From the IMG/VR virus record IMGVR_UViG_3300020202_000061, positions 248,001-312,000 of that record: 64,000 nt of DNA; one strand, written 5' to 3'. Position numbers and translations under genes: made by a program. Below are positions 1 to 51,321 of the stretch, piece after piece; the stretch's first letter is position 1; every line of letters starts with the position of its first letter. The notes under the pieces were generated by a model. The model made no database searches, was not told the origin of the DNA, and saw only the letters and a list, made by a program, of their open reading frames with translations.

Positions 1-71
1 GAGGTATTCGCGTTCATGGATCAGGCCCTAAAATCGGGGATTGAACAAGCCACGAATCGTCGTCGTAACTC

Positions 72-100
72 TTGACATTCCCTCTGATCTGTCCTAAGTA
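72..100 (+). promoter_or_regulatory. sigma70-like promoter for Y-RNA-like element and tRNA-Pro
   Basis: TTGACA-N17-TAAGTA. Confidence 0.7.
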
Positions 101-110
101 GGATGTTGAT

Positions 111-232
111 GACGGGTCGTTAGAATTGGGTTATTGTTGCCTTGATAGCAAACGAGTGGGTTCGATTCCCACGCATCCTCGGAAGAGGGTGTCCTTGGCG
201 GTAGTTCTAGTCCGGTTCGCCTCTTATCCGTC
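111..232 (+). ncRNA. Y RNA (YrlA)-like structured RNA with internal T-arm
   Basis: Terminal stem GACGGG/TCCGTC. Second stem GAATTGGGTTA/TAGTCCGGTTC. 5' GGGTCG and 3' CCTCTTATCC resemble the Ro60-binding stem. Internal GTGGG-TTCGATT-CCCAC T-arm; no 3' CCA. Confidence 0.6.
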
Positions 233-238
233 TTCTTT

Positions 239-316
239 CTGGGATTAGCTCAGTCAGGTTAGAGTGTCGGTTTTGGAAGCCGAAGGTCGAGGGTTCAAAT
301 CCCTCATCCCAGACCA
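239..316 (+). tRNA. tRNA-Pro(TGG)
   Basis: Cloverleaf, anticodon loop TTTGGAA, 3' CCA. Confidence 0.95.
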
Positions 317-334
317 AAATTGGAAGACCAGTTG

Positions 335-376
335 AAAAATCCCCACGAAACTCCTATGTGAGTCGTGGGGATTTTC
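335..376 (+). terminator. intrinsic terminator after tRNA-Pro
   Basis: AAAATCCCCACGA...TCGTGGGGATTTT inverted repeat. Confidence 0.7.
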
Positions 377-377
377 G

Positions 378-611
378 TTGGGGGAATTCATGATCAGTAT
401 TTTGATTGTTTCGCTGGTGGCCGGTTTGGTCATCGCTATTGGTTTTTTGATCAACGACTCTCTTCCAGTGAAATACCCCTATCTGGGGTTCCTTGGCGTT
501 ACAGTGTTTTGGCCCCTCGGGCTGGTTGCGGCTGCAATCTTCGGGCTCGGGTATTTTCTGTTTCAGACTGGGCGTGAGATCGGCGTACTGCTGGGGATGG
601 TGAAGTCATGA
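378..611 (+). CDS. small 2-TM membrane protein (WP-motif family)
   Basis: Two hydrophobic segments, VFWPL motif, SD GGGGA. Confidence 0.8.
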   Translation: MGEFMISILIVSLVAGLVIAIGFLINDSLPVKYPYLGFLGVTVFWPLGLVAAAIFGLGYFLFQTGREIGVLLGMVKS

Positions 612-862
612 TCAGTGGGATTCTCGCATATATTTTGGTCGGTGGCTTATGCTGGGCATTCGGGGTTCTGGGGCTTGTTGCTTTCGATGAAAGTGATCAC
701 GGATTGTTTAGCCAATATCCGTATCTGATCTCGTTGATTCTATTGCTGGGATGGCCTTTGGTTATTCCGAGTGTTATATTGGGACTGATCTGTTATGCGC
801 TGTATCGCGCCACTAAGGAGATTCAACTGCTCTGGTCACGTCTTTCCGGGAAAGCCCTATGA
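608..862 (+). CDS. small 2-TM membrane protein (WP-motif family)
   Basis: ATGA overlap, LGWPL motif. Confidence 0.8.
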   Translation: MISGILAYILVGGLCWAFGVLGLVAFDESDHGLFSQYPYLISLILLLGWPLVIPSVILGLICYALYRATKEIQLLWSRLSGKAL

Positions 863-1104
863 ATTGGTTTTTTGTTGCACTTGCCTACTCGTTTATAGGA
901 GCATGCATCATTGCATTTTATTGGTCGGCGTATGACGATGCCCCACTCGATGCGAAACCACCCCTGCCGTTGTGGACCGGAACCCTACTATTTTTGGGCT
1001 GGCCAATTGCAGGAGTTATTGGTATAATTATCGGGTCGTATTTGTTCGGCCGCGCCCTCTACAGGGAAGCCGCAGAGTTCTTCTCCAAAAAGGGAACTAC
1101 CTGA
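859..1104 (+). CDS. small 2-TM membrane protein (WP-motif family)
   Basis: ATGA overlap, LGWPI motif. Confidence 0.8.
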   Translation: MNWFFVALAYSFIGACIIAFYWSAYDDAPLDAKPPLPLWTGTLLFLGWPIAGVIGIIIGSYLFGRALYREAAEFFSKKGTT

Positions 1105-1301
1105 TGCAGTATTTGGTGTTCTTGGTGGTCGGTCTGTTGTGGGGACTCTACGCCTGCTCGATCCAGGCCCACCGCAAACCCGATGTCGGCGCACTCCGTC
1201 AGACATGGACATTCGTGTTGAACTTTGTCGGCTGGTTCATCCTGATTCCAACCGCTGTGATCAGCCGCCTTATCTACAACCGTACCCTTATTGTTGGATG
1301 A
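1104..1301 (+). CDS. small 2-TM membrane protein
   Basis: TGATG overlap, start MQYLVFLVV, VGWFI motif. Confidence 0.75.
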   Translation: MQYLVFLVVGLLWGLYACSIQAHRKPDVGALRQTWTFVLNFVGWFILIPTAVISRLIYNRTLIVG

Positions 1302-2617: not shown

Positions 2618-3165
2618 TGAATGAACTTATCTGGTTTGGAATCTCTCTGGTCCTGGTATTTCTGAGCACGATGATCGCGCTCACCGGTCAACTCTCGACG
2701 GTATCGCGTTGGTCTGTGATCCTGTTGTTCGCGGGATTCATCGGATGCGGCGGCCTCACTGCGGTGAACCTGCTGTCCCGTCCCATGCCCATCGCCTGGT
2801 ACCAGTCTCTGCCGTGGAATCCCGAACTCAACGGGGTTCAGGTCATCGGATACTCCCAGGATCAGGGCGAGGCCATCTACTTGGTCATCAAGGTTCCGGG
2901 CTCTGAGAAGCCCGTGAGCCTGATTCTACCCTGGTCCGATAAGACCGCCGAGAGCGGAGATTCCGCCATGGTCAACCTGGAGAAGGCCGGACCCGGCGCG
3001 GAATTGATGTTCTCCGCTGGCGGTCAGGGACCGGCTGGAGGCGTCGGCACGTTCCAGGTCGGATATCCCCAACCTCTTCCAGAGAAGGAACCCGTCCGGT
3101 CTGAGGAAACCATCAATCTGAACGCTCCGGCGGTGCCCGCACAGATGCCGAACGAAACCCCTTGA
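2617..3165 (+). CDS. membrane protein, third gene of the TolQ-like operon
   Basis: 2 N-terminal TM, LSRP.P, AIYL, LPWS; TGATG coupling. Confidence 0.7.
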   Translation: MNELIWFGISLVLVFLSTMIALTGQLSTVSRWSVILLFAGFIGCGGLTAVNLLSRPMPIAWYQSLPWNPELNGVQVIGYSQDQGEAIYLVIKVPGSEKPVSLILPWSDKTAESGDSAMVNLEKAGPGAELMFSAGGQGPAGGVGTFQVGYPQPLPEKEPVRSEETINLNAPAVPAQMPNETP

Positions 3166-3190
3166 CATTCCCGAGAGTATCATCTAAATA
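3162..3190 (+). promoter_or_regulatory. tRNA promoter
   Basis: TTGACA-N17-TAAATA. Confidence 0.75.
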
Positions 3191-14141: not shown

Positions 14142-14319
14142 ACATTTTTCCCACACTCCGAAAGTTATTTTTACATCGTGATCTAAAAGGTTTCTATGTT
14201 TAACGGAAACCCCTTGATGTGATCATTAAAGACCTTATGTTACGCTATATACTAAGAGGCACCGAGGGTTTCAGATGCCTCTATGGGGATTCCAAATCAA
14301 CAACGGGGTCGAACAACGA

Positions 14320-16254
14320 ATGTCTAATCTCTTCGCGGATTTCAAGACAACTTTCGAAAAAACCAGGAAAACCGAACTCTCTCTCCAGGAATACTTGGAC
14401 CTGTGCAAACAGGATCGAATGGCTTACGCCTGGGCGGTGGAGAGAATGCTGGCGGCTATCGGCGAGCCCAAGCTAGTTGACACGTCCGAGGACCCGCGCC
14501 ATTCCAGAATCTTCCTGAACCGCACCATCAAGGTGTATGACGTGTTCAAGGATTTCTACGGGATGGAGGCGACCATCGAAAAGATCGTCGCCTTCTTCAT
14601 GAAGGCCGCTCAAGGTCTGGAAGAGAAGAAGCAGGTTCTCTATCTGATGGGGCCGGTTGGATCGGCTAAGTCCTCTCTGGCAGAGCGTCTCAAGGCTCTG
14701 ATGGAGAAGATGCCGATCTACGTGCTCAAGGCGGGTGATCAAATCAGCCCGGTGTTCGAGAATCCCTTGGGTCTGTTCGATCCGAACGTGTGGAGTGATC
14801 GCCTCCAAGAGGAATACGGGATTCCTCGTCGTTATCTGACCGGGTTGATGTCGCCTTGGGCGGTAAAGCGCCTGAACGAGGACTTCGACGGGGATATCAG
14901 CAAGTTCAGTGTGGTGAAGCTCTACCCGAGCAAGCTCAAGCAGATAGCGATCTCCAAGGTCGAACCCGGTGACGAGAACAACCAAGACATTTCGTCTCTG
15001 GTCGGTAAGGTTGATATCCGCAAGCTGGCGGAGTTCTCCGCTCGTGATACCGATGCCTACAGCTACTCCGGTGGTCTCTGCTTGGCCAACCAGGGCGTGC
15101 TGGAGTTCGTCGAGATGTTCAAGGCACCGATCAAGATGCTGCATCCGATGCTCACCGCGACCCAGGAGGGCAACTACAACGGCACCGAGGCGATCTCTGG
15201 TATTCCGTTCCAGGGTGTGATTCTGGCCCACTCCAACGAATCCGAATGGGAGTCGTTCAAGAGCAACAAGAACAACGAGGCATTCCTCGACCGCATCAGC
15301 ATCATCAAGGTCCCTTACTGCCTGCGTGTCACGGACGAGACCAAAATTTACCAGAAGCTCTTGCGTGATTCGTCCCTGGACAAGGCTCCATGCACACCCA
15401 AGACGCTGGAATTGCTCTCCCAAATGAGCGTGCTTTCCCGTCTGATCTATCCGGAGAACTCTTCGATCCATTCGAAGATGAAGGTCTACGATGGTGAGAA
15501 CATCAAGGAAACCGATCCCTACGCCAAATCTGTTCAGGAATATCGTGAACTGGCCGGGGTCAACGAGGGTATGACCGGTCTCAGCACCCGCTGGGCTTTC
15601 AAGGTGCTGTCATCGGTGTTCAATTATGATCCGAACGAGATCGGCGCGAATCCGGTCCATCTGTTCCGTATCTTGGAGGACAAGATCACTGAGGAACAAT
15701 TCCCGAAGGAAGTCGAAGAGGACCTTCGTGAACACCTCCAGTGGATCAAGGCCAAGTACATCGATTTCATCGGCAATGAAATCCAGGTTGCCTACCTGGA
15801 GTCCTACACCGAATACGGCCAGAACATGTTCGACCGCTACATCGTCTATGCGGATCATTGGATCGAGGATCGGGACTATCGTGATTCCGAGACCGGCGAG
15901 ATGTACAACCGCGAAACCCTGAATAAGGAACTCGAAAAGATCGAGAAGCCCTCCGGTATCGCGAATCCCAAGGAATTCCGTAACGAGGTGGTCAACTACT
16001 CTCTCCGTTACAAGGCCAACCACGGCAAGTATCCGAGGTGGAACTCCTACGAGAAGCTCAAGGAAATCATCGAGAAGAAGATGTTCGCGAACATCTCTGA
16101 TCTCCTGCCGGTGATCTCGTTCGAGAAGAAATCCTCCGAGGAGCACGAGAAGAAGCACAAGGATTTTGTGCAGCGCATGAAAGAGAAGGGATACAGCGAG
16201 CGCCAGACCCGTATCGTCGTGGACTGGTTCATGAAGGTACAGAAGTCCAACTGA
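14320..16254 (+). CDS. prkA: PrkA/YeaG family AAA+ serine kinase
   Basis: GPVGSAKSS P-loop, EPGDENNQDIS, ANQGVLEFVEMFKAPIK.LHP, HSNESEW, NNEAFLDR; alternative start 14275. Confidence 0.97.
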   Translation: MSNLFADFKTTFEKTRKTELSLQEYLDLCKQDRMAYAWAVERMLAAIGEPKLVDTSEDPRHSRIFLNRTIKVYDVFKDFYGMEATIEKIVAFFMKAAQGLEEKKQVLYLMGPVGSAKSSLAERLKALMEKMPIYVLKAGDQISPVFENPLGLFDPNVWSDRLQEEYGIPRRYLTGLMSPWAVKRLNEDFDGDISKFSVVKLYPSKLKQIAISKVEPGDENNQDISSLVGKVDIRKLAEFSARDTDAYSYSGGLCLANQGVLEFVEMFKAPIKMLHPMLTATQEGNYNGTEAISGIPFQGVILAHSNESEWESFKSNKNNEAFLDRISIIKVPYCLRVTDETKIYQKLLRDSSLDKAPCTPKTLELLSQMSVLSRLIYPENSSIHSKMKVYDGENIKETDPYAKSVQEYRELAGVNEGMTGLSTRWAFKVLSSVFNYDPNEIGANPVHLFRILEDKITEEQFPKEVEEDLREHLQWIKAKYIDFIGNEIQVAYLESYTEYGQNMFDRYIVYADHWIEDRDYRDSETGEMYNRETLNKELEKIEKPSGIANPKEFRNEVVNYSLRYKANHGKYPRWNSYEKLKEIIEKKMFANISDLLPVISFEKKSSEEHEKKHKDFVQRMKEKGYSERQTRIVVDWFMKVQKSN

Positions 16255-16265
16255 GGGCTATCATA

Positions 16266-17555
16266 GTGACCACGGTCATTGACAGACGTAAGACCGACCG
16301 CCAGAAGAACCTCTCCAATAGGCAGAGGTTCATCAAAAGAGCCAAGGAAGCGATCAAGAAGTCGATCCGTGGAGCCATCCTCAATAAGGATCGCTCGATC
16401 AAAGACTCATCCGGCGGTAATGTTCGAATCCCCAACAAAGGGACGACAGAGCCGAATTTCCGCAATGGAGACGGTGGTCGTAAGATCATCGTTCGTCCGG
16501 GTAATCCAGGCACTGTGCCGGGTGACAAGATTCCACGTCCCAGAAAGGATCAGACTTCGGGCCGTGGTAACAGTGATCCATCCAAAGACCCCGCTGAGTT
16601 GATGGATGAGTTCGAGTTCACGCTGACCCGTGAGGAATTTCTGGACTTCTTCTTTGAGGACCTGGAATTGCCCAACTTGGTCAAGACCGCCCTCAAAGAG
16701 GTGGTCGAGTACAAATGGTCCCGTTCGGGATTTGCCTCGGTCGGTATGCCGTCGAATCTCGACATTACCCGAACCTTCATCAATTCGATGGGTCGCCATT
16801 TCGCTCTGGCCGGAGCCTACCAGAAAAAGATCGACGAACTTCGCGCTAATGGTGGATCGGAAGAGGATATCGCGCTCTGGGAGAAGAGGAAGCGGACCAT
16901 CCCGTTCATGGATGACGTGGACCTGCGCTATCGCCTGTTTGTGAAGCAGCCCAAGCCGATCACCAAAGCGGTAATGTTCTGTCTGATGGACGTATCTGGC
17001 AGTATGGGCGAGTACGAGAAGGACTTGGCCAAGCGTTTCTTCATGCTCCTCTACATGTTTCTGGAGCGCAAATACGAGTCGGTCACCGTGGTGTTCATCC
17101 GTCATACCACCGAAGCCAAAGAGGTGGACGAGCAGGAGTTCTTCTACTCGAAAGAATCAGGTGGAACCGTGGTCAGCACGGCTCTGGAAATGACTGCTGA
17201 TCTGATTCAGCGGCGCTTCAACAGTTCAGACTACAACATCTACGTGAGCCAGTGTTCGGACGGCGACAATGCCTACGATGACAACTCCGTGTGCACCCAG
17301 ATCATCCGTGAGGATATTCTGCCTTATGTCCAGTATTTTGCGTATGTCCAGGTCGGACATCAGCGCGATGAGATGGCCAACATGTGGGGTGTGTTTGCGG
17401 GTCGTCTTGGGAACACCACGAGCACGAATTCCCTCTACGAGGTTTATAAGGAGATCGAGAAGAATACCTCCCATTTCAAGGTGAAGAACCTGAATGGTCC
17501 TGCCGACATCTACCCGGTGTTTCGCGAACTCTTTGAGAAGGACATCAAGGTATGA
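16266..17555 (+). CDS. yeaH: YeaH/YhbH (DUF444) vWA-like protein
   Basis: IDRR, NRQRF, AVMFCLMDVSGSM, FIRHT, SGGT, SDGDN. Confidence 0.96.
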   Translation: MTTVIDRRKTDRQKNLSNRQRFIKRAKEAIKKSIRGAILNKDRSIKDSSGGNVRIPNKGTTEPNFRNGDGGRKIIVRPGNPGTVPGDKIPRPRKDQTSGRGNSDPSKDPAELMDEFEFTLTREEFLDFFFEDLELPNLVKTALKEVVEYKWSRSGFASVGMPSNLDITRTFINSMGRHFALAGAYQKKIDELRANGGSEEDIALWEKRKRTIPFMDDVDLRYRLFVKQPKPITKAVMFCLMDVSGSMGEYEKDLAKRFFMLLYMFLERKYESVTVVFIRHTTEAKEVDEQEFFYSKESGGTVVSTALEMTADLIQRRFNSSDYNIYVSQCSDGDNAYDDNSVCTQIIREDILPYVQYFAYVQVGHQRDEMANMWGVFAGRLGNTTSTNSLYEVYKEIEKNTSHFKVKNLNGPADIYPVFRELFEKDIKV

Positions 17556-19042
17556 GCCTGCTCTGGAATGATAATGAATGGACTTTCCCGCTCATCGACA
17601 AGGTCTACAAGGAGATCGAGCAGATCGGCGTGGGTGAGATGGGTCTGGACATCTTCCCGAATCAGATCGAGGTCATCAGCAGTGATCAGATGCTGGACGC
17701 TTATGCAAGCCATGCCATGCCAGTCATGTATAAGCACTGGTCCTTTGGCAAGTCGTATTCGGTCAACAAGAAACTCTATGAGAACGGTCAGCAGGGTCTG
17801 GCCTACGAGGTCGTAATCAACTCGAATCCCTGCATTGCCTATCTCATGGAGGACAACACCATGACCATGCAGGCTTTGGTCATGGCCCATGCCAGCATCG
17901 GTCACAACAACTTCTTCAAGACTAACTACCTGTTCCAGCAGTGGACCGATCCGGATGGGATCATCGACTACCTGATCTTCGCCAAGAATTATGTGGCGAA
18001 GTGTGAGGAGCGATACGGTGCCGAACGAGTCGAGGAAGTTCTCGATTCCTGTCACGCTCTCATGGACCAGGGTATGGACCGCTTTAAGCGAGCCCGCAAA
18101 CGTTCCCGTCAGGAGGAGAAGCTCCGTGCGGCCGAACGTGAAGCCTATCACCAAAGTCGTGTGAGTGAGCTTTGGCCGGACACCTGGAAGTCCGAGACCC
18201 CGGCCCAGAAGGAAGAACGCAAGAAGCGGATTCTTCCGGAGCCCGAGGACAACATCCTCTACTTCATCGAGAAGAACTCGCCGATCCTGGAGCCGTGGGA
18301 ACGAGAGATCGTTCGTATCGTCCGTAAGGTATCGCAGTATTTCTGGCCTCAGATGCAGACCCAGGTCGGTAATGAGGGCTGGGCCACCCATACCCATTAC
18401 TTCATTATGAATCGTCTCTACGAGAAGGGTCTGATCTCGGACGGTTCTCTGTTGGAGTTCTTCAAGTCCCACACGGGCGTTATCGCGCAGTATCGCATGC
18501 AGCGTCTGAACCCGTACTGCCTGGGATTCAACATTTTCCGCGACATCAAGCGTATGTGCGAGAAACCCACCGATGAGGATCGTGAATGGTTCCCCGATCT
18601 GGTCGGGATGAACTGGCTGGAAGCCGCGAAGGACGCGCGTGAGAACTACAAGGATGAGAGCCTGATCCTCCAGTACCTCAGCCCCAAGGTGATCCGCGAT
18701 CTTAAGCTTTTCTCGATCCTGGATGATTACGGCACGGACTCGATGAACTATATCGTCCAGAACATCCACGACCGGGAAGGCTACAAGGAAGTTCGTCGAT
18801 CCCTCTCTCGCAACTACGACATCAACATGAGAATTCCACAGATTCAGGTGTCGGATGTCAATGTGGATGGGGATCGCAAACTGATCCTTCGCCATACCCG
18901 TCACAACTATGTGCCGCTGGATCAGGCCGATCTCAAGGAAACTCTCCTCCATGTGAGGCGTCTCTGGGGGTTTGCGGTGCGTCTGGACTTCTACAATCCC
19001 GGCGCGGTCAGTCCCACGGATTGGGTAGCGGTGGGTGAATAA
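17552..19042 (+). CDS. spoVR: SpoVR/YcgB family protein
   Basis: HWSFGK, LAYEVVINSNPCIAYLME.N, AH...GHN.FFK.N, NEGWA, NPY.LG. Confidence 0.96.
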   Translation: MSLLWNDNEWTFPLIDKVYKEIEQIGVGEMGLDIFPNQIEVISSDQMLDAYASHAMPVMYKHWSFGKSYSVNKKLYENGQQGLAYEVVINSNPCIAYLMEDNTMTMQALVMAHASIGHNNFFKTNYLFQQWTDPDGIIDYLIFAKNYVAKCEERYGAERVEEVLDSCHALMDQGMDRFKRARKRSRQEEKLRAAEREAYHQSRVSELWPDTWKSETPAQKEERKKRILPEPEDNILYFIEKNSPILEPWEREIVRIVRKVSQYFWPQMQTQVGNEGWATHTHYFIMNRLYEKGLISDGSLLEFFKSHTGVIAQYRMQRLNPYCLGFNIFRDIKRMCEKPTDEDREWFPDLVGMNWLEAAKDARENYKDESLILQYLSPKVIRDLKLFSILDDYGTDSMNYIVQNIHDREGYKEVRRSLSRNYDINMRIPQIQVSDVNVDGDRKLILRHTRHNYVPLDQADLKETLLHVRRLWGFAVRLDFYNPGAVSPTDWVAVGE

Positions 19043-19082: not shown

Positions 19083-19334
19083 ATGATCTTCGATCTGGAA
19101 CACGCTCGAAAGGCTCGTAAGAAAGGCTCCGGAAGTCTGCTCAAGGAGTGGATTCCAACCTCGCCCCAAGTGGTGGAGGATTTCCGAGTCGGCGACAAGG
19201 TGAAGTTCCGCGACGGCAAGACCGGCACCATTCTGTGCTTCGGAGCGAGTTCCATGCGGGGACCATTACTGGCCCTGGTCGCTGTGAATGGTGTCAACTA
19301 CACCTGTCCGATCTCGGAACTCCGCTCGGCCTAA
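19083..19334 (+). CDS. small SH3/KOW-like protein
   Basis: FRVGDKVKF..GKTGTI; own promoter upstream. Confidence 0.65.
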   Translation: MIFDLEHARKARKKGSGSLLKEWIPTSPQVVEDFRVGDKVKFRDGKTGTILCFGASSMRGPLLALVAVNGVNYTCPISELRSA

Positions 19335-19337
19335 CCC

Positions 19338-19366
19338 TTGACAATTCCAAGATTGCGGAATAAATA
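19338..19366 (+). promoter_or_regulatory. tRNA promoter
   Basis: TTGACA-N17-TAAATA. Confidence 0.75.
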
Positions 19367-23042: not shown

Positions 23043-23192
23043 ATGGTAGAACGAGGCGACAAGATCACCCTGAAAGAGGCGATTGCGGAAGCGCAACGCG
23101 GAACTCTGAAACAGCGAGTCGCCCGACATCGCAAACGCCTGAAACGCAAGTATGGACTCGGACCCAAGCCGAAACGCTCCAAAACCCCTTGA
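23043..23192 (+). CDS. small basic protein (49 aa)
   Basis: MVERGDKIT...RHRKRLKRKYG...TP*. Confidence 0.55.
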   Translation: MVERGDKITLKEAIAEAQRGTLKQRVARHRKRLKRKYGLGPKPKRSKTP

Positions 23193-23217
23193 CATCCTCG
23201 GGGTTATCCTCTAAATA
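23189..23217 (+). promoter_or_regulatory. tRNA promoter
   Basis: TTGACA-N17-TAAATA. Confidence 0.75.
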
Positions 23218-23975: not shown

Positions 23976-24940
23976 ACCTCGGCATCGTGATTCGGTGCGG
24001 TGTCGAAGATCGACAACTCCGTGATCGTCTTGAGCACGGTCAGACCGAGGTCCTCTCTCAGGTGATAGAGCATGGTCTTGAGGTTGTCATCGTAGGCCGA
24101 CTTCGTGATTCCCGCGTGCCTATAGGTGAGGATCAGCGGAGCGTTCTGCTTGGCACGGTTGACCGACATGAACAGGGCGTAGCGTTCCTGATCTTCATCC
24201 TTGAAGGAGAGATCGACAGCCTGTCGGATGATATCCTCCGCTCCGGGCGTGACGATCTCGATATGGGTTTCCAGATACACACCGGGCTCTCCGCCCACGG
24301 GCTTCCCCTCGGTCTCTAACTGCTTGATGATGGGATGCCAGGGTAGAGTCTCGATCTTTTGTCGAACCACATTGAGCATGGTATGGCGAGTGAGATCGTA
24401 GACCAGCTTCGTCATCACATCCATGGCTTCCTGCTGGGTTCCGAACACCACCTTCGAACACATCACATCGGCCTTGAACGGGTCATACCCACGAAGCACA
24501 TGATAGGGCTCGATATCCAGGCATTTCATCTCGTTTCGGAAACAGAAGTCTCGGAACGCAAATAACACCTCTTCGTGATTCAACACTTCCGAACCCACCG
24601 TGATGTGAATCTCGAACGGGATGGGAAACTTGACGGTGCCTTCCTGTGCCTGTAAACCGCTCCACTTATTCATTTTTGTGCGAAGCATGTCGTCGAGGTC
24701 TTGATCGTTGAACCCGAGCGAGTATCCGATGCTGAGTGCGGCCAGGATCACATCCGCAACTTCATCCAGGACGTGATGACGTGAGGTCAATCGGTGCAGG
24801 GTGTCGGGTGCGCCCTCCAGTGGGAGAATGGCCTGATTGAGTTCACCAGTTTCGGCCGCCAGCTTGTTACCCTTCTGACCGAGTGTCTTACGGTCGCGCT
24901 CGGTGAGAACCTTGATGAAATCCAGAGTTTCCTGACGCAT
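23966..24940 (-). CDS. MazG-like NTP pyrophosphohydrolase fused to an unknown domain
   Basis: ETGEL...DEVADVIL; C-terminal FEIHITV, RQKIE, LETHI. Confidence 0.75.
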   Translation of the reverse strand: MRQETLDFIKVLTERDRKTLGQKGNKLAAETGELNQAILPLEGAPDTLHRLTSRHHVLDEVADVILAALSIGYSLGFNDQDLDDMLRTKMNKWSGLQAQEGTVKFPIPFEIHITVGSEVLNHEEVLFAFRDFCFRNEMKCLDIEPYHVLRGYDPFKADVMCSKVVFGTQQEAMDVMTKLVYDLTRHTMLNVVRQKIETLPWHPIIKQLETEGKPVGGEPGVYLETHIEIVTPGAEDIIRQAVDLSFKDEDQERYALFMSVNRAKQNAPLILTYRHAGITKSAYDDNLKTMLYHLREDLGLTVLKTITELSIFDTAPNHDAEVYA

Positions 24941-32559: not shown

Positions 32560-32588
32560 TTGACACCCGAGGGGTATTCACCTAAATA
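32560..32588 (+). promoter_or_regulatory. tRNA promoter
   Basis: TTGACA-N17-TAAATA. Confidence 0.75.
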
Positions 32589-37352: not shown

Positions 37353-37942
37353 AGAAGATTGATCGATCCTGGACGTTCAACGGACGTTATCACGATGAGA
37401 CCTACCATATCACCGTGAAGAAACTTCCGGAAGAACTCGATCAGAAGCACCTGAAAGGGTTGCTCACGCTCTATGTGCATCGTCTGCGTGAGTTCTATGG
37501 AGACGGTACCTATCCGGTGAGTTCGAAAATTGGCTATGGTTTGCGAGACCTCGGTCTGGTCGAGCAGGCCGGGAATGCATGGAATTCGTATCTGGTCTGG
37601 TCCCCACAGGTTAAGAGGTTCATGGAGGCACGTCAGCGGAAGTGCACGCATGAATGGAGGCGTTGTCACATTCCGAGTGTCTACCTCAGGGAAATATACT
37701 GCAAACACTGCGGGAAGAACTTGCCCGAGAACAAGCGGACCATCAACCCGTATGAGGTTCGCGACCTCCTGGGCGAGCACTACAATCACACCTTCAAGAG
37801 AGCAGTGGATGTGCTCTGGAACGATCCACTGCCGTTGCGTGAGCGCAAGGCCAAGCTTCAAGAGTGGGCCACTCAGGTAAAGCAGAAGAACGAATCCTAC
37901 AAGCACAGCAAGCACGAATCTCGTGCCGAATACGGAGCCTGA
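37346..37942 (+). CDS. hypothetical protein with Zn ribbon
   Basis: C.HEW...YCKHCGK. Confidence 0.7.
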   Translation: MVKKIDRSWTFNGRYHDETYHITVKKLPEELDQKHLKGLLTLYVHRLREFYGDGTYPVSSKIGYGLRDLGLVEQAGNAWNSYLVWSPQVKRFMEARQRKCTHEWRRCHIPSVYLREIYCKHCGKNLPENKRTINPYEVRDLLGEHYNHTFKRAVDVLWNDPLPLRERKAKLQEWATQVKQKNESYKHSKHESRAEYGA

Positions 37943-37944
37943 TC

Positions 37945-38268
37945 ATGGACAACAGAATGACCTGGGAAGAGATAGGCGAAATCTTCGGGGGTAAGCTCAT
38001 CCCGATGGATGTGGCCAAACTCATCTACGAGGATAAGCACGATCTCACATCAGAGCAACTCCGCGATAAGCTCAAGGGGATCGCTGCGACTCGTGAACAC
38101 TTCCAGAGCTACACGGACTGGGACTATCTGACCTCATTGGCCGAGAGCATCGGCAAGAACCGGGCGGGGGAGTTCAACAAGTACGACACGGGTCGTCTCC
38201 TGGAGATCGCGCGTCGAATCAATCCTCAGCACTTTGTCGTGCCCAAGAAAGAAGGGATGCGCTGCTAG
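37945..38268 (+). CDS. hypothetical protein
   Basis: SD GGAG. Confidence 0.7.
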   Translation: MDNRMTWEEIGEIFGGKLIPMDVAKLIYEDKHDLTSEQLRDKLKGIAATREHFQSYTDWDYLTSLAESIGKNRAGEFNKYDTGRLLEIARRINPQHFVVPKKEGMRC

Positions 38269-44068: not shown

Positions 44069-44144
44069 GCCAGATTACAGTTTAGTGGTAGAACACGCGG
44101 CCGATAACCGTGGAGCGGGGGTTCGATTCCCTCATCTGGCACCA
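44069..44144 (+). tRNA. atypical tRNA-Ile(GAT) with C33
   Basis: Loop CCGATAA, 4-nt acceptor/D connector, CCA. Confidence 0.75.
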
Positions 44145-49457: not shown

Positions 49458-49876
49458 AGCTTCCACCCATTCAGGGTGGCCAAATAGGTCAGGAGGCGCT
49501 GGCGGTCAGAATTCCCCGCTATGGGGATATCCTGGTGGAATCGGTCGGGCCGTGCGTATCCGAGCATGACCATGAGGTCCTTGAACCCGGTCTGAACCTG
49601 GATGTTGCCGTGGACACCCATTTGGTGGGCCATGCGGACCAACCCCATGAAGGTGCGGGTGCGCTCGTATTCGGTCTCCCTGGGAAGGCGACGGTGTTCC
49701 AGGTCCCAGTAAGCCTGTCGGGCGTCGGGTTTAGCCATGATGAGGCGGAATTTCGGACGGATTTGGCGGAAGGTCAACGCGACCGGACCCGGCACAGGAA
49801 TCTTGCGGGCGATGGTTTGTCGAACACGACCGGGAACTTCCGCATCAGGGCGGCTATAAATCTCAAACAGATTCAT
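49454..49876 (-). CDS. hypothetical late protein
   Basis: Coupled to the amidoligase gene; N-terminus MNLFE. Confidence 0.7.
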   Translation of the reverse strand: MNLFEIYSRPDAEVPGRVRQTIARKIPVPGPVALTFRQIRPKFRLIMAKPDARQAYWDLEHRRLPRETEYERTRTFMGLVRMAHQMGVHGNIQVQTGFKDLMVMLGYARPDRFHQDIPIAGNSDRQRLLTYLATLNGWKL

Positions 49877-51321
49877 TCTGCTGCTTTCGGATAGAATTGC
49901 TTGGCACGGTAGAGTTGCTCGAAATGCTTGCGGCCGGTCTCGACCGCGACCTTATAGAGCTTGGTCAGAAACTCCTTGCGATAGACCTCGGGAGTGGTGG
50001 CCACGTACATCATCACGATCAGTTGTAGACAAGTGTCCTCGATCTCGGACCAACGATCCTCGTAGTCGGAGTTGCCTGCGGCACGAAACTCGATGTAGCC
50101 CTGATCTAGTTTGGTCAGGTTGACCCGGAAGTATTTCTGTTTGGGTACGGCACGACGAAACAATTCGATCACCTTTTGGATGTCCTGCTGGTTCAGTCTG
50201 ATCCGACCACCAAGATTCGAGAGCACGCGCATAAGCTCGGCTTTGTTCCGGGCGAAGTTCTGCACCATTTGGTAATAGGTCTGTGCGGCCATTACCCCGC
50301 TGTTCACGGCGTGACCCTCACCCTTATTGAATTGGAGACGGTCGTAATTCTGTGCGATGTAGGCGTCTCCCATCAGGAACAACAGCTTCACGTAATCCAC
50401 ATCAGCACCAGCCTTGCCAATGTTGATGTGCAAACCCGTAGCCTGATTCGTCTCGGCTTGAGTTCCAGGAATGTGCCGACCGATGTTCTGGATGAACAGG
50501 AGCACCTTGTGCAAGGCTTTCAAACCTTCTGCCGCAGGCTTAATCGGTGAGACCACCTCGACACCGACCATGCCTTGTTCCCATAGCTCGTTGATGTCCA
50601 GTGAGTTGTCCATGGTAACGGCCCAGGTCGAGTAGTTGTGGGTCTTCGTCTTGGTATCGCCCCGCATCAACCGCACCACCACGGGTTCACCCAGATACTC
50701 CTCAAGCGCCTCGGCGATTACCTGATAGAGAACCTCGATCTGAACATGACTGTCATTGGGATCGAAATTCTGATCCTCCTCACCGATCATGAACTGCCTG
50801 TAGCTCTCATCATCGAGGTTCTTATAGGCGACCATCCCCACACGATCACCTTTCGCGATAAGACGTTTGATCTTGCGCAGGGCAGTTTCATCCTCGATGT
50901 CGAAACCCTCATCCGGCCACACACGAAGAGCCGTGATCAAGCCGTAGGGTTTGAACTTCTTGACCAACGCCCCAAACATATCCCGGAACTTGGTCTGTCC
51001 GGCCTCGGGGAAATTGGCCTGAAATAGACGGTCCATGCGCTCGCGGACGATCTCTTGATTGTCCTGTCCCAGACCTTCCGCACCGAGCGGGGTGAAACTC
51101 TTCAACAGATCGTACCACCGGAGGTCTCCCAGCTTCTTCACGTACCAGAAACGATCCTTGCTGCGACTGGAATTCTTCTTGTAGAGACCGGCCATTCTCT
51201 TGGCCGCGTTCAACACGTAGAACTCCGTCTCGAATCCCATCGTCATGTTGGGATCGGCCAGAGCCTGATTGATTAGGGCTTGCCGGACCTTGGCCCCCTC
51301 GAAGAGAATCGGGTTTGTCAT
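49873..51321 (-). CDS. amidoligase-family (COOH-NH2 ligase) protein
   Basis: GFETE, DNSL, GVEVVSP, TGLHINIG, KY..VN, YIEFR.AG; TAAATA upstream. Confidence 0.8.
   Translation of the reverse strand: MTNPILFEGAKVRQALINQALADPNMTMGFETEFYVLNAAKRMAGLYKKNSSRSKDRFWYVKKLGDLRWYDLLKSFTPLGAEGLGQDNQEIVRERMDRLFQANFPEAGQTKFRDMFGALVKKFKPYGLITALRVWPDEGFDIEDETALRKIKRLIAKGDRVGMVAYKNLDDESYRQFMIGEEDQNFDPNDSHVQIEVLYQVIAEALEEYLGEPVVVRLMRGDTKTKTHNYSTWAVTMDNSLDINELWEQGMVGVEVVSPIKPAAEGLKALHKVLLFIQNIGRHIPGTQAETNQATGLHINIGKAGADVDYVKLLFLMGDAYIAQNYDRLQFNKGEGHAVNSGVMAAQTYYQMVQNFARNKAELMRVLSNLGGRIRLNQQDIQKVIELFRRAVPKQKYFRVNLTKLDQGYIEFRAAGNSDYEDRWSEIEDTCLQLIVMMYVATTPEVYRKEFLTKLYKVAVETGRKHFEQLYRAKQFYPKAAE

Follow-up and report, generated by a model that had tools for sequence, protein, structure and literature searches.

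A Y RNA-like (YrlA-type) gene of a giant soil phage in whose record no Ro60 gene was found

In this work, we provide evidence that a 122-nt stretch in the genome of a giant soil phage is a gene for a small non-coding RNA of the bacterial Y RNA (YrlA-like) family. It is one of five copies scattered among the phage tRNA genes, while no gene for Ro60, the usual protein partner of Y RNAs, could be found in the phage record. The window analysed is a stretch of 64,000 nt, positions 248001-312000 of the IMG/VR virus record IMGVR_UViG_3300020202_000061, and the element, here named P1, occupies window positions 111-232 on the + strand. The initial annotation had described here two end-pairing helices separated by an internal loop, a perfect T arm and two more hairpins, and everything it described is indeed present. 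It had interpreted the element as a YrlA-like RNA co-transcribed with tRNA-Pro, and this interpretation is supported, though for the identity of the RNA the support comes from homology and not from the search with YrlA models that had been proposed as the test, and for the co-transcription it comes from sequence signals alone. Its remark that no Ro60 gene lies in the window extends to the whole record, whereas its suggestions that the RNA pairs with a phage or host Ro60 or serves as a tRNA decoy remain hypotheses.

The record is linear, 347,504 bp long, lacks terminal repeats, is estimated by CheckV to be 90% complete, and comes from a soil metagenome. ARAGORN finds 55 tRNA genes and a tmRNA in the genome, and eighteen of the tRNAs lie in the window. 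The family-B DNA polymerase of the phage is about 32-34% identical to those of jumbo phages such as Sinorhizobium phage Phosso, Ralstonia phage RsoM2USA, Salicola phage SCTP-2 and Escherichia phage 121Q. A PolB peptide search in IMG/VR found nothing, and a megablast of the first 3.4 kb against cultured phages matched only tRNA-Asn.

The ends of P1 form helix 1, in which 111-117 (GACGGGU) pairs with 226-232 (AUCCGUC) through 7 standard pairs. This is followed by an asymmetric internal loop with CGUUAGA (118-124) on the 5′ side and UCGCCUCUU (217-225) on the 3′ side, the latter having the same 9-nt length as the family consensus UCGUUUCUU. The loop strings given by the initial annotation (5′ GGGTCG, 3′ CCTCTTATCC) overlap the inner end of helix 1 but are otherwise right. 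In helix 2, 125-130 (AUUGGG) pairs with 211-216 (UCCGGU), as seen both in the covariance-model alignment and in the minimum-free-energy fold. Next comes UUAU (131-134), the conserved YUAY that begins the V region in YrlA RNAs (PMC4201824) and that is invariant in all 64 sequences of one of our alignments of the family (A2). It is followed by a V hairpin at 137-151 (UUGC-CUUGAUA-GCAA), anticodon-arm-like with a 7-nt loop, by a perfect T arm at 156-172 (GUGGG-UUCGAUU-CCCAC) bearing the T-loop consensus UUCGAnU, and by an acceptor-like (AS) hairpin at 173-192 (GCAUCCUC-GGAA-GAGGGUGU), whose 8 bp are closed by a GNRA tetraloop. The stretch 193-210 (CCUUGGCGGUAGUUCUAG) is a D-arm remnant, which keeps a D-loop-like GG..GGUAG but has no D stem and no clear third helix. 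Thus, P1 carries the long interrupted stem, the YUAY, the V hairpin, the T arm and the AS hairpin of YrlA, but not its D-arm stem-loop.

The folding energy alone does not exceed chance: the MFE of P1 is −41.9 kcal/mol (z = −1.72), and 11 of 200 shuffles fold as well. The Rfam YrlA model (RF02553) gives no hit on P1 at E ≤ 10. ARAGORN and the Rfam tRNA model (RF00005) make no call either, and the only Rfam match, to tRNA-Sec (RF01852), reaches 20.8 bits against a gathering score of 47, with many mispairs, so that the tRNA-Sec reading was rejected. The models of metazoan Y RNA (RF00019) and nematode stem-bulge RNA (RF01656) show no match at E ≤ 1 anywhere in the phage genome. The significance of P1 comes from comparison.

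A DNA search of the phage genome together with a T-loop scan revealed two similar elements between the tRNA-Leu genes, P2 (genome 229976-230111) and P3 (230204-230338). Both have the order T arm, closed hairpin, canonical D arm (GCAU-AACGGUA-GUGC in P2 and GCC-AAGUGGUUAA-GGC in P3), which is the permuted tRNA-like layout that defines YrlA (PMC4201824). RF02553 matches P2 over its whole length at 36.8 bits (E about 1e-6) and the T-AS-D part of P3 at 19.1 bits, both below the gathering score of 69 bits. However, the value for P2 is within about a bit of the 37-41.5 bits scored by Ro60-adjacent bacterial members of the family described below. A MAFFT alignment of the three paralogs alone was too poor in the middle to use, and blastn of P2 against cultured phages gave only T-arm-sized matches, one of which led to Microbacterium phage Zooman.

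To find relatives elsewhere, we performed pattern scans that used no protein information. Two scans of IMG/VR returned only chance matches, with no T arm or no stem, and a scan of metagenome contigs gave one true relative (locus L029), whereas a scan of 185,579 species genomes with GGGTCG-N4-8-TTGGGTTAY-N10-36-GGTTCRA gave 86 loci, most of which were true relatives. In total, 71 elements from bacterial genomes and metagenome contigs were extracted, chiefly from Verrucomicrobiota, with some from Chloroflexi, a myxobacterium and others. Of these, 57 have a TROVE (Ro60) gene on the same strand within the fetched locus of 8 kb or less, usually 0-2 kb away, and seven of the 14 without one have under 400 nt of sequence on that side. 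These are therefore Ro60-adjacent Y RNAs in the operational sense of Chen et al. 2014 (PMC4201824). In Verrucomicrobiota they usually lie at the end of tRNA arrays. RF02553 scores them at only 36.6-41.5 bits, so the whole subfamily lies below the threshold of that model.

On an independent MAFFT alignment of 55 bacterial members (A3), we tested a 32-pair structure comprising helix 1, helix 2, a 3-bp third helix, the T arm, the AS hairpin and the D arm. The results showed 98.4% of cells paired and 14 pairs changing on both sides, which none of 500 shuffles reached, while slid controls collapsed to 30-45% paired. A covariance model (R1) built from these bacterial sequences only, without any phage sequence, was then run over the phage genome. 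It scored P2 at 94.3 bits (E 3.5e-20), P3 at 63.2 bits (E 1.5e-12), P1 (window 111-233) at 45.9 bits (E 2.4e-8) and P4 (genome 237980-238055) at 33.4 bits (E 2.8e-5); P5 (about 238300-238401) scored 25.7 bits (E 4.8e-6, in a search of 801 nt only). All five matches span model positions 1-130, whereas tRNA genes give only partial matches of 37 bits or less. In P1, the model skips the D stem. P4 is 76 nt long and consists of the stem module around a short insert, with no tRNA-like domain, and P5 lies between two tRNA-Gln genes and carries a T-like arm.

The five copies are conserved in a related uncultured phage. A PrkA homolog 92% identical to that of the window lies on a 409-kb contig with the same gene order, but this contig ends just where P1 would be. 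A second relative, the Logan contig L147, shares 89% identity in a neighbouring protein and carries all five orthologs in the same order and positions, with the P1 ortholog (P1′, L147:18483-18606) 4 nt upstream of tRNA-Pro(UGG). Between P1 and P1′, the promoter-like motif is conserved and the stem module is identical apart from two loop substitutions. The V hairpin (GUUUG...CAAGC in P1′), the T stem and the AS hairpin differ in sequence but, as read by eye from the alignment, can still pair, with the GNRA loops GGAA and GUGA, respectively; the stemless D remnant (CCGUGGUGGUAGGAUUAG in P1′) keeps its length and its GG..GGUAG. Across the ten phage copies, 96.4% of cells are paired and 18 pairs change on both sides, which none of 500 shuffles reached, although this alignment was fitted to the model and so leans toward the structure. 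In helix 1, 100% of cells are paired and 4 of the 7 pairs change on both sides, as do 6 of the 7 modelled pairs of the AS hairpin. P1 is therefore a maintained variant and not fresh decay.

The signals around P1 make its co-transcription with tRNA-Pro likely. A promoter-like motif lies at 72-100, CTTGACA (−35 hexamer TTGACA at 72-77) followed by a 17-nt spacer and TAAGTA (−10, 95-100). The motif TTGACA-N17-TAA[AG]TA occurs 12 times in the genome, all on the + strand (shuffled genomes give 0.05), and at least ten of the sites lie directly in front of the tmRNA, seven tRNA clusters, P4 or P1. A generic sigma-70 scan does not list it, because the −10 hexamer ends in A. P1 is followed after 6 nt by tRNA-Pro(UGG) at 239-316 (+), detected by ARAGORN and by the Rfam tRNA model (69.7 bits), and then by an intrinsic terminator hairpin at 336-375 (+) with UUUUCGUU (−26.4 kcal/mol, z = −5.58, 0 of 200 shuffles fold as well); a terminator-like site was also listed by the generic scan, which showed no other promoter-like site in between. 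The likely unit is thus promoter, P1, tRNA-Pro, terminator, as inferred from DNA alone: among sequencing runs, the sequence was found in two soil DNA runs and in no RNA run, and the reads aligned to window positions 1-1200 showed no variants and no ends. P2, P3 and P5 are flanked by tRNAs on both sides, at 1-7 nt.

Searches for the protein partner in the 347.5-kb record were all negative. No TROVE match was obtained with Pfam at E ≤ 1, with tblastn using six Verrucomicrobial Ro60 proteins, or at E < 1 with a custom profile that also included Ro60 from Phosso, RsoM2USA and Zooman, run with --max on all 1745 open frames. Neither RtcB nor an RNase PH/PNPase core was found in the record, which does encode two Rnl2-type RNA ligases. 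The 765-aa vWA protein downstream of P4 was considered as a divergent Ro60 but rejected, since its vWA domain is N-terminal, it belongs to phrog_2426, and it has no TROVE signal. Cultured phages tell a different story. Phosso has five R1 hits (29-69 bits) in unannotated gaps and a Ro60 gene more than 250 kb from the nearest of them, RsoM2USA has two R1 hits and a weak TROVE match, and Zooman has two R1 hits (89 and 72 bits) after a tRNA array, 2.7 kb upstream of Ro60, while 121Q and SCTP-2 have neither. The R1 hits of Phosso, a phage of S. meliloti, lie at 19155-19290, 24188-24322, 24425-24561, 420756-420880 and 434477-434622, and its Ro60 gene at 290343-291407. The ancestral state in this phage neighbourhood is therefore plausibly Y RNAs together with a phage Ro60, and the present phage has either lost Ro60 or carries it in the missing 10% or so of the genome.

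The motif thought to contact Ro60 in YrlA, GNCGAAN0-1G (PMC4201824), deviates in P1: together with G116-U117, the 5′ side of the internal loop reads GUCGUUAG, so that GNCG is kept but AA is replaced by UU. At the same alignment position, the family reads GUCGAAG (canonical) in Chloroflexi, GUCGCAGG in Verrucomicrobia, GCCGAU in Phosso, GCCGAAAG and GCCGAC in Zooman, GUCGUU in P1-P3, GCCGCU in P4 and GCCGAC in P5. GUCGUU also occurs in the bacterial loci L054 and L029, which lie 371 and 195 nt from Ro60 genes. GNCG is constant and the next two bases are free, so the deviation does not exclude Ro60 binding.

Taken together, sequence comparison establishes the homology to Ro60-adjacent Y RNAs, the secondary structure, the five conserved copies, and their placement in tRNA units behind a shared promoter motif. 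All five copies share the Y RNA stem module, i.e., a terminal helix, an asymmetric internal loop carrying GNCG.. on the 5′ side and a U-rich 3′ side, a second helix, and then UUAU; P2 and P3 also carry the full permuted tRNA-like domain, P1 keeps the T arm, the AS hairpin and a V hairpin, and P4 is the stem module alone. What we infer is the rest. Probably, P1 is transcribed from the stable-RNA promoter of the phage together with tRNA-Pro, and RNase P cleavage at the tRNA 5′ end would release it with a short U-rich tail, whereas P2, P3 and P5 would be cut out on both sides by tRNA-end processing. Least certain is the inferred role: because no Ro60 gene is present in the record, the mature RNAs would act on host proteins, occupying or redirecting the host Ro60 ring and, through it or directly, the 3′-5′ exonuclease PNPase. 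This would shield the very large set of phage tRNAs from the host's decay of structured RNA, or re-aim that decay, and a phage that floods the cell with about 55 tRNAs has an obvious interest in controlling it. Such a role finds precedents: Y RNAs tether Ro60 to PNPase (PMC4201824), and the Yrl RNAs of Thermus phage phiLo bind host PNPase with or without phage Ro60 and attenuate its activity (PMC12135203). In addition, according to earlier structural work, Y RNA binding blocks access to the Ro60 cavity. We hold this explanation as a whole with moderate confidence; the family membership is highly probable, the co-transcription with tRNA-Pro is likely, and a Ro60- or PNPase-directed role, with a hypothetical partner, is about as likely as not.

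An alternative, which we regard as unlikely though not excluded, is that the RNAs work without Ro60, as tRNA-shaped decoys or inhibitors of host enzymes that recognise tRNA elbows or structured RNA, such as PNPase, tRNA-modifying or processing enzymes, or tRNA-targeting defence nucleases, the Y RNA ancestry then being only history. The negative searches for Ro60 in the record, the Ro60-independent binding of PNPase by the phiLo RNAs (PMC12135203), the fact that YrlA RNAs are substrates of tRNA-recognising enzymes (PMC4201824), and the investment of the phage in tRNA upkeep (about 55 tRNAs, a tmRNA and two Rnl2-type RNA ligases) speak for it. However, the part conserved in all five copies, and nearly invariant between the two phages, is the stem module and not the tRNA-like domain, which P4 lacks entirely, and no anticodon arm sits in tRNA position, so that anticodon nucleases are unlikely targets. 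It is somewhat more doubtful still that the phage encodes its own Ro60 in the missing part of the genome, such that P1-P5 would be ordinary phage Y RNAs serving a phage Ro60, as in Phosso, RsoM2USA, Zooman and phiLo. The incompleteness of the record, the 409-kb contig of a close relative, and the distance of more than 250 kb between Ro60 and the Y RNA genes in Phosso leave room for this, while against it stand the negative searches of the 347.5 kb in hand and, as weak negative evidence only, a search with Phosso Ro60, which listed many homologs on jumbo-phage-sized contigs but none on a contig of 409,210 bp or 347,504 bp among the best 120. Finally, that P1 is a decaying tRNA or Y RNA pseudogene, or merely a leader or spacer helping to process tRNA-Pro, is very unlikely: despite the loss of the D stem and third helix, an R1 score well below those of P2 and P3, the weak tRNA-Sec-like match and the position directly against a tRNA gene, the stemless layout, the promoter and an almost unchanged stem module are kept in the related phage while the inner hairpins change and, by eye, stay paired, D-arm-less members also occur beside Ro60 in Chloroflexi (at locus L055, 71 nt from Ro60, and as the second copy at locus L052), and P4 has the same module with no tRNA directly downstream.

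A more far-reaching possibility, which we consider speculative and rather unlikely, is that this phage lineage has given up its own Ro60 but kept, and multiplied to five, a graded set of Y RNAs, produced as by-products of tRNA-array transcription and processing, which would form an RNA-only counter-measure that blinds or redirects the host's Ro60/PNPase surveillance of structured RNA. More broadly, Y RNAs may be functionally tied to tRNA arrays, since the same linkage (tRNA array, then Y RNA, then Ro60) appears in dozens of Verrucomicrobial genomes; that would point to a Ro60/Y RNA role in the quality control of array-encoded tRNAs.

[quoted passage not shown] To these we add the unannotated members in the cultured phages Phosso, RsoM2USA and Zooman, which are hit full length by R1 and are available for testing the idea at the bench. 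These phage-borne RNAs have the same architecture and occur in several copies per genome, but those phages encode their own Ro60, whereas in the present record there are five copies, graded from a full tRNA-like domain down to the stem module alone, and no detectable Ro60. If their release by tRNA-processing enzymes holds, the phage offers a natural system to ask what Y RNAs do on their own or against a host Ro60. Compared to YrlA of Salmonella Typhimurium and many other bacteria, P1 shares the stem with its GNCG.. loop and the permuted order of YUAY, V hairpin, T arm, AS hairpin and D-arm position, but scores below the RF02553 threshold, reads GUCGUU, lacks the D stem, has no Ro60 or rtcBA genes nearby or anywhere in the record, and is embedded in tRNA clusters under a tRNA-type promoter. 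Further features of YrlA are Ro60 binding, tRNA-type modifications and its use as a substrate by tRNA enzymes. Deinococcus radiodurans Yrn1 and the Ro60-Y RNA-PNPase (RYPER) machine, in which a Y RNA combines a Ro60-binding stem with a T-arm-containing effector module, provide the functional model for what such an RNA does, although there is no sequence match, the order of the arms differs, and both PNPase and Ro60 would have to come from the host. With ordinary tRNA or tRNA-Sec genes, P1 shares the T arm with the UUCGAnU loop, a D-loop-like GG and the placement in tRNA clusters, but it has no acceptor end and no anticodon arm in tRNA position.

A recent transfer of a host tRNA-array/Y RNA island into the phage was also considered and rejected, since the similarity is limited to about 78% over 78 nt. 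As to the host, only a hint is provided by the phage PrkA, which is about 65-67% identical to proteobacterial PrkA, and by the tmRNA, which ARAGORN calls as a permuted type.

Four more Y RNA-like genes were found in the same phage genome outside the window, at positions 229976–230111 (P2), 230204–230338 (P3), 237980–238055 (P4) and about 238300–238401 (P5). These copies range from those with a full tRNA-like domain (P2, P3) to the stem module alone (P4), and all of them are conserved in a related phage contig (L147). Just downstream of P4, the phage genome encodes a 765-aa protein (238644–240941; L146:9645–11942) with an N-terminal vWA domain, which belongs to phrog_2426, a family of unknown function. 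Its homologs are widespread in metagenomes and in Burkholderia, and the protein is not Ro60-like.

A phage promoter motif, CTTGACA-N17-TAA[AG]TA, occurs 12 times in the genome, and only on the + strand. In the window the sites lie at 72–100, 3162–3190, 19338–19366, 23189–23217 and 32560–32588, while further sites are located elsewhere in the genome. At least ten sites lie in front of stable-RNA genes, namely the tmRNA, tRNA clusters and Y RNAs. The tmRNA at genome 128216–128552 is reported by ARAGORN as a permuted type. In addition, the Rfam tRNA model finds at window 44070–44139 a tRNA (41.4 bits) that was missed by ARAGORN, and several other T-loop-bearing stretches in tRNA clusters, at genome positions about 229735–229815, 178740–178840, 292150–292225 and 292400–292470, are not called by ARAGORN either.

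We also examined the surroundings of the bacterial relatives (loci L042–L127, taken from bacterial genomes). In Verrucomicrobiota, the Y RNA and Ro60 genes sit at the 3′ end of large same-strand tRNA arrays, as exemplified by the loci L051 (1273–2940), L071, L058 and L050. Of the 71 elements, 44 have at least 2 tRNAs within 3 kb upstream, and some 8-kb loci hold up to 19 tRNAs. We did not find this linkage of a tRNA array, Y RNA and Ro60 described in the papers we consulted. Furthermore, in four cases (L109:4095–4163, L072:1380–1449, L096:3610–3679 and L052:1447–1516) an element of roughly 70 nt, located at or just upstream of the Ro60 start codon, matches the model of the nematode stem-bulge RNA (RF01656), a Y RNA homolog. 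The scores are 36.8–40.4 bits against a gathering score of 38, which is reached by three of the four. Another element (L072:532–665) matches Deinococcus_Y_RNA at 47 bits against 80. Judged from these model matches, the elements may represent further short Y RNAs or a Ro60-binding leader.

The covariance model R1, built from bacterial sequences, finds members of this RNA family in cultured phages that also encode Ro60. The hits are at 19155–19290, 24188–24322, 24425–24561, 420756–420880 and 434477–434622 in Phosso (PV764938.1), at 75202–75342 and 49861–49990 in RsoM2USA (MG752970.1), and at 96677–96813 and 96940–97074 in Zooman (OK040793.1). At the sites where the annotation was checked (three in Phosso and both in Zooman), they lie in unannotated gaps. 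These phages are usable as laboratory models.

Two Rnl2-type RNA ligase genes (PF09414, 67 and 62 bits) are present in the phage genome at 181143–181769 and 37479–37970, and one of them lies about 2 kb from the tRNA cluster at 178 kb. Finally, the phage carries at window 14275–19042 a complete gene trio PrkA/DUF444 (YeaH)/SpoVR (YcgB), the PrkA being about 65–67% identical to proteobacterial PrkA.
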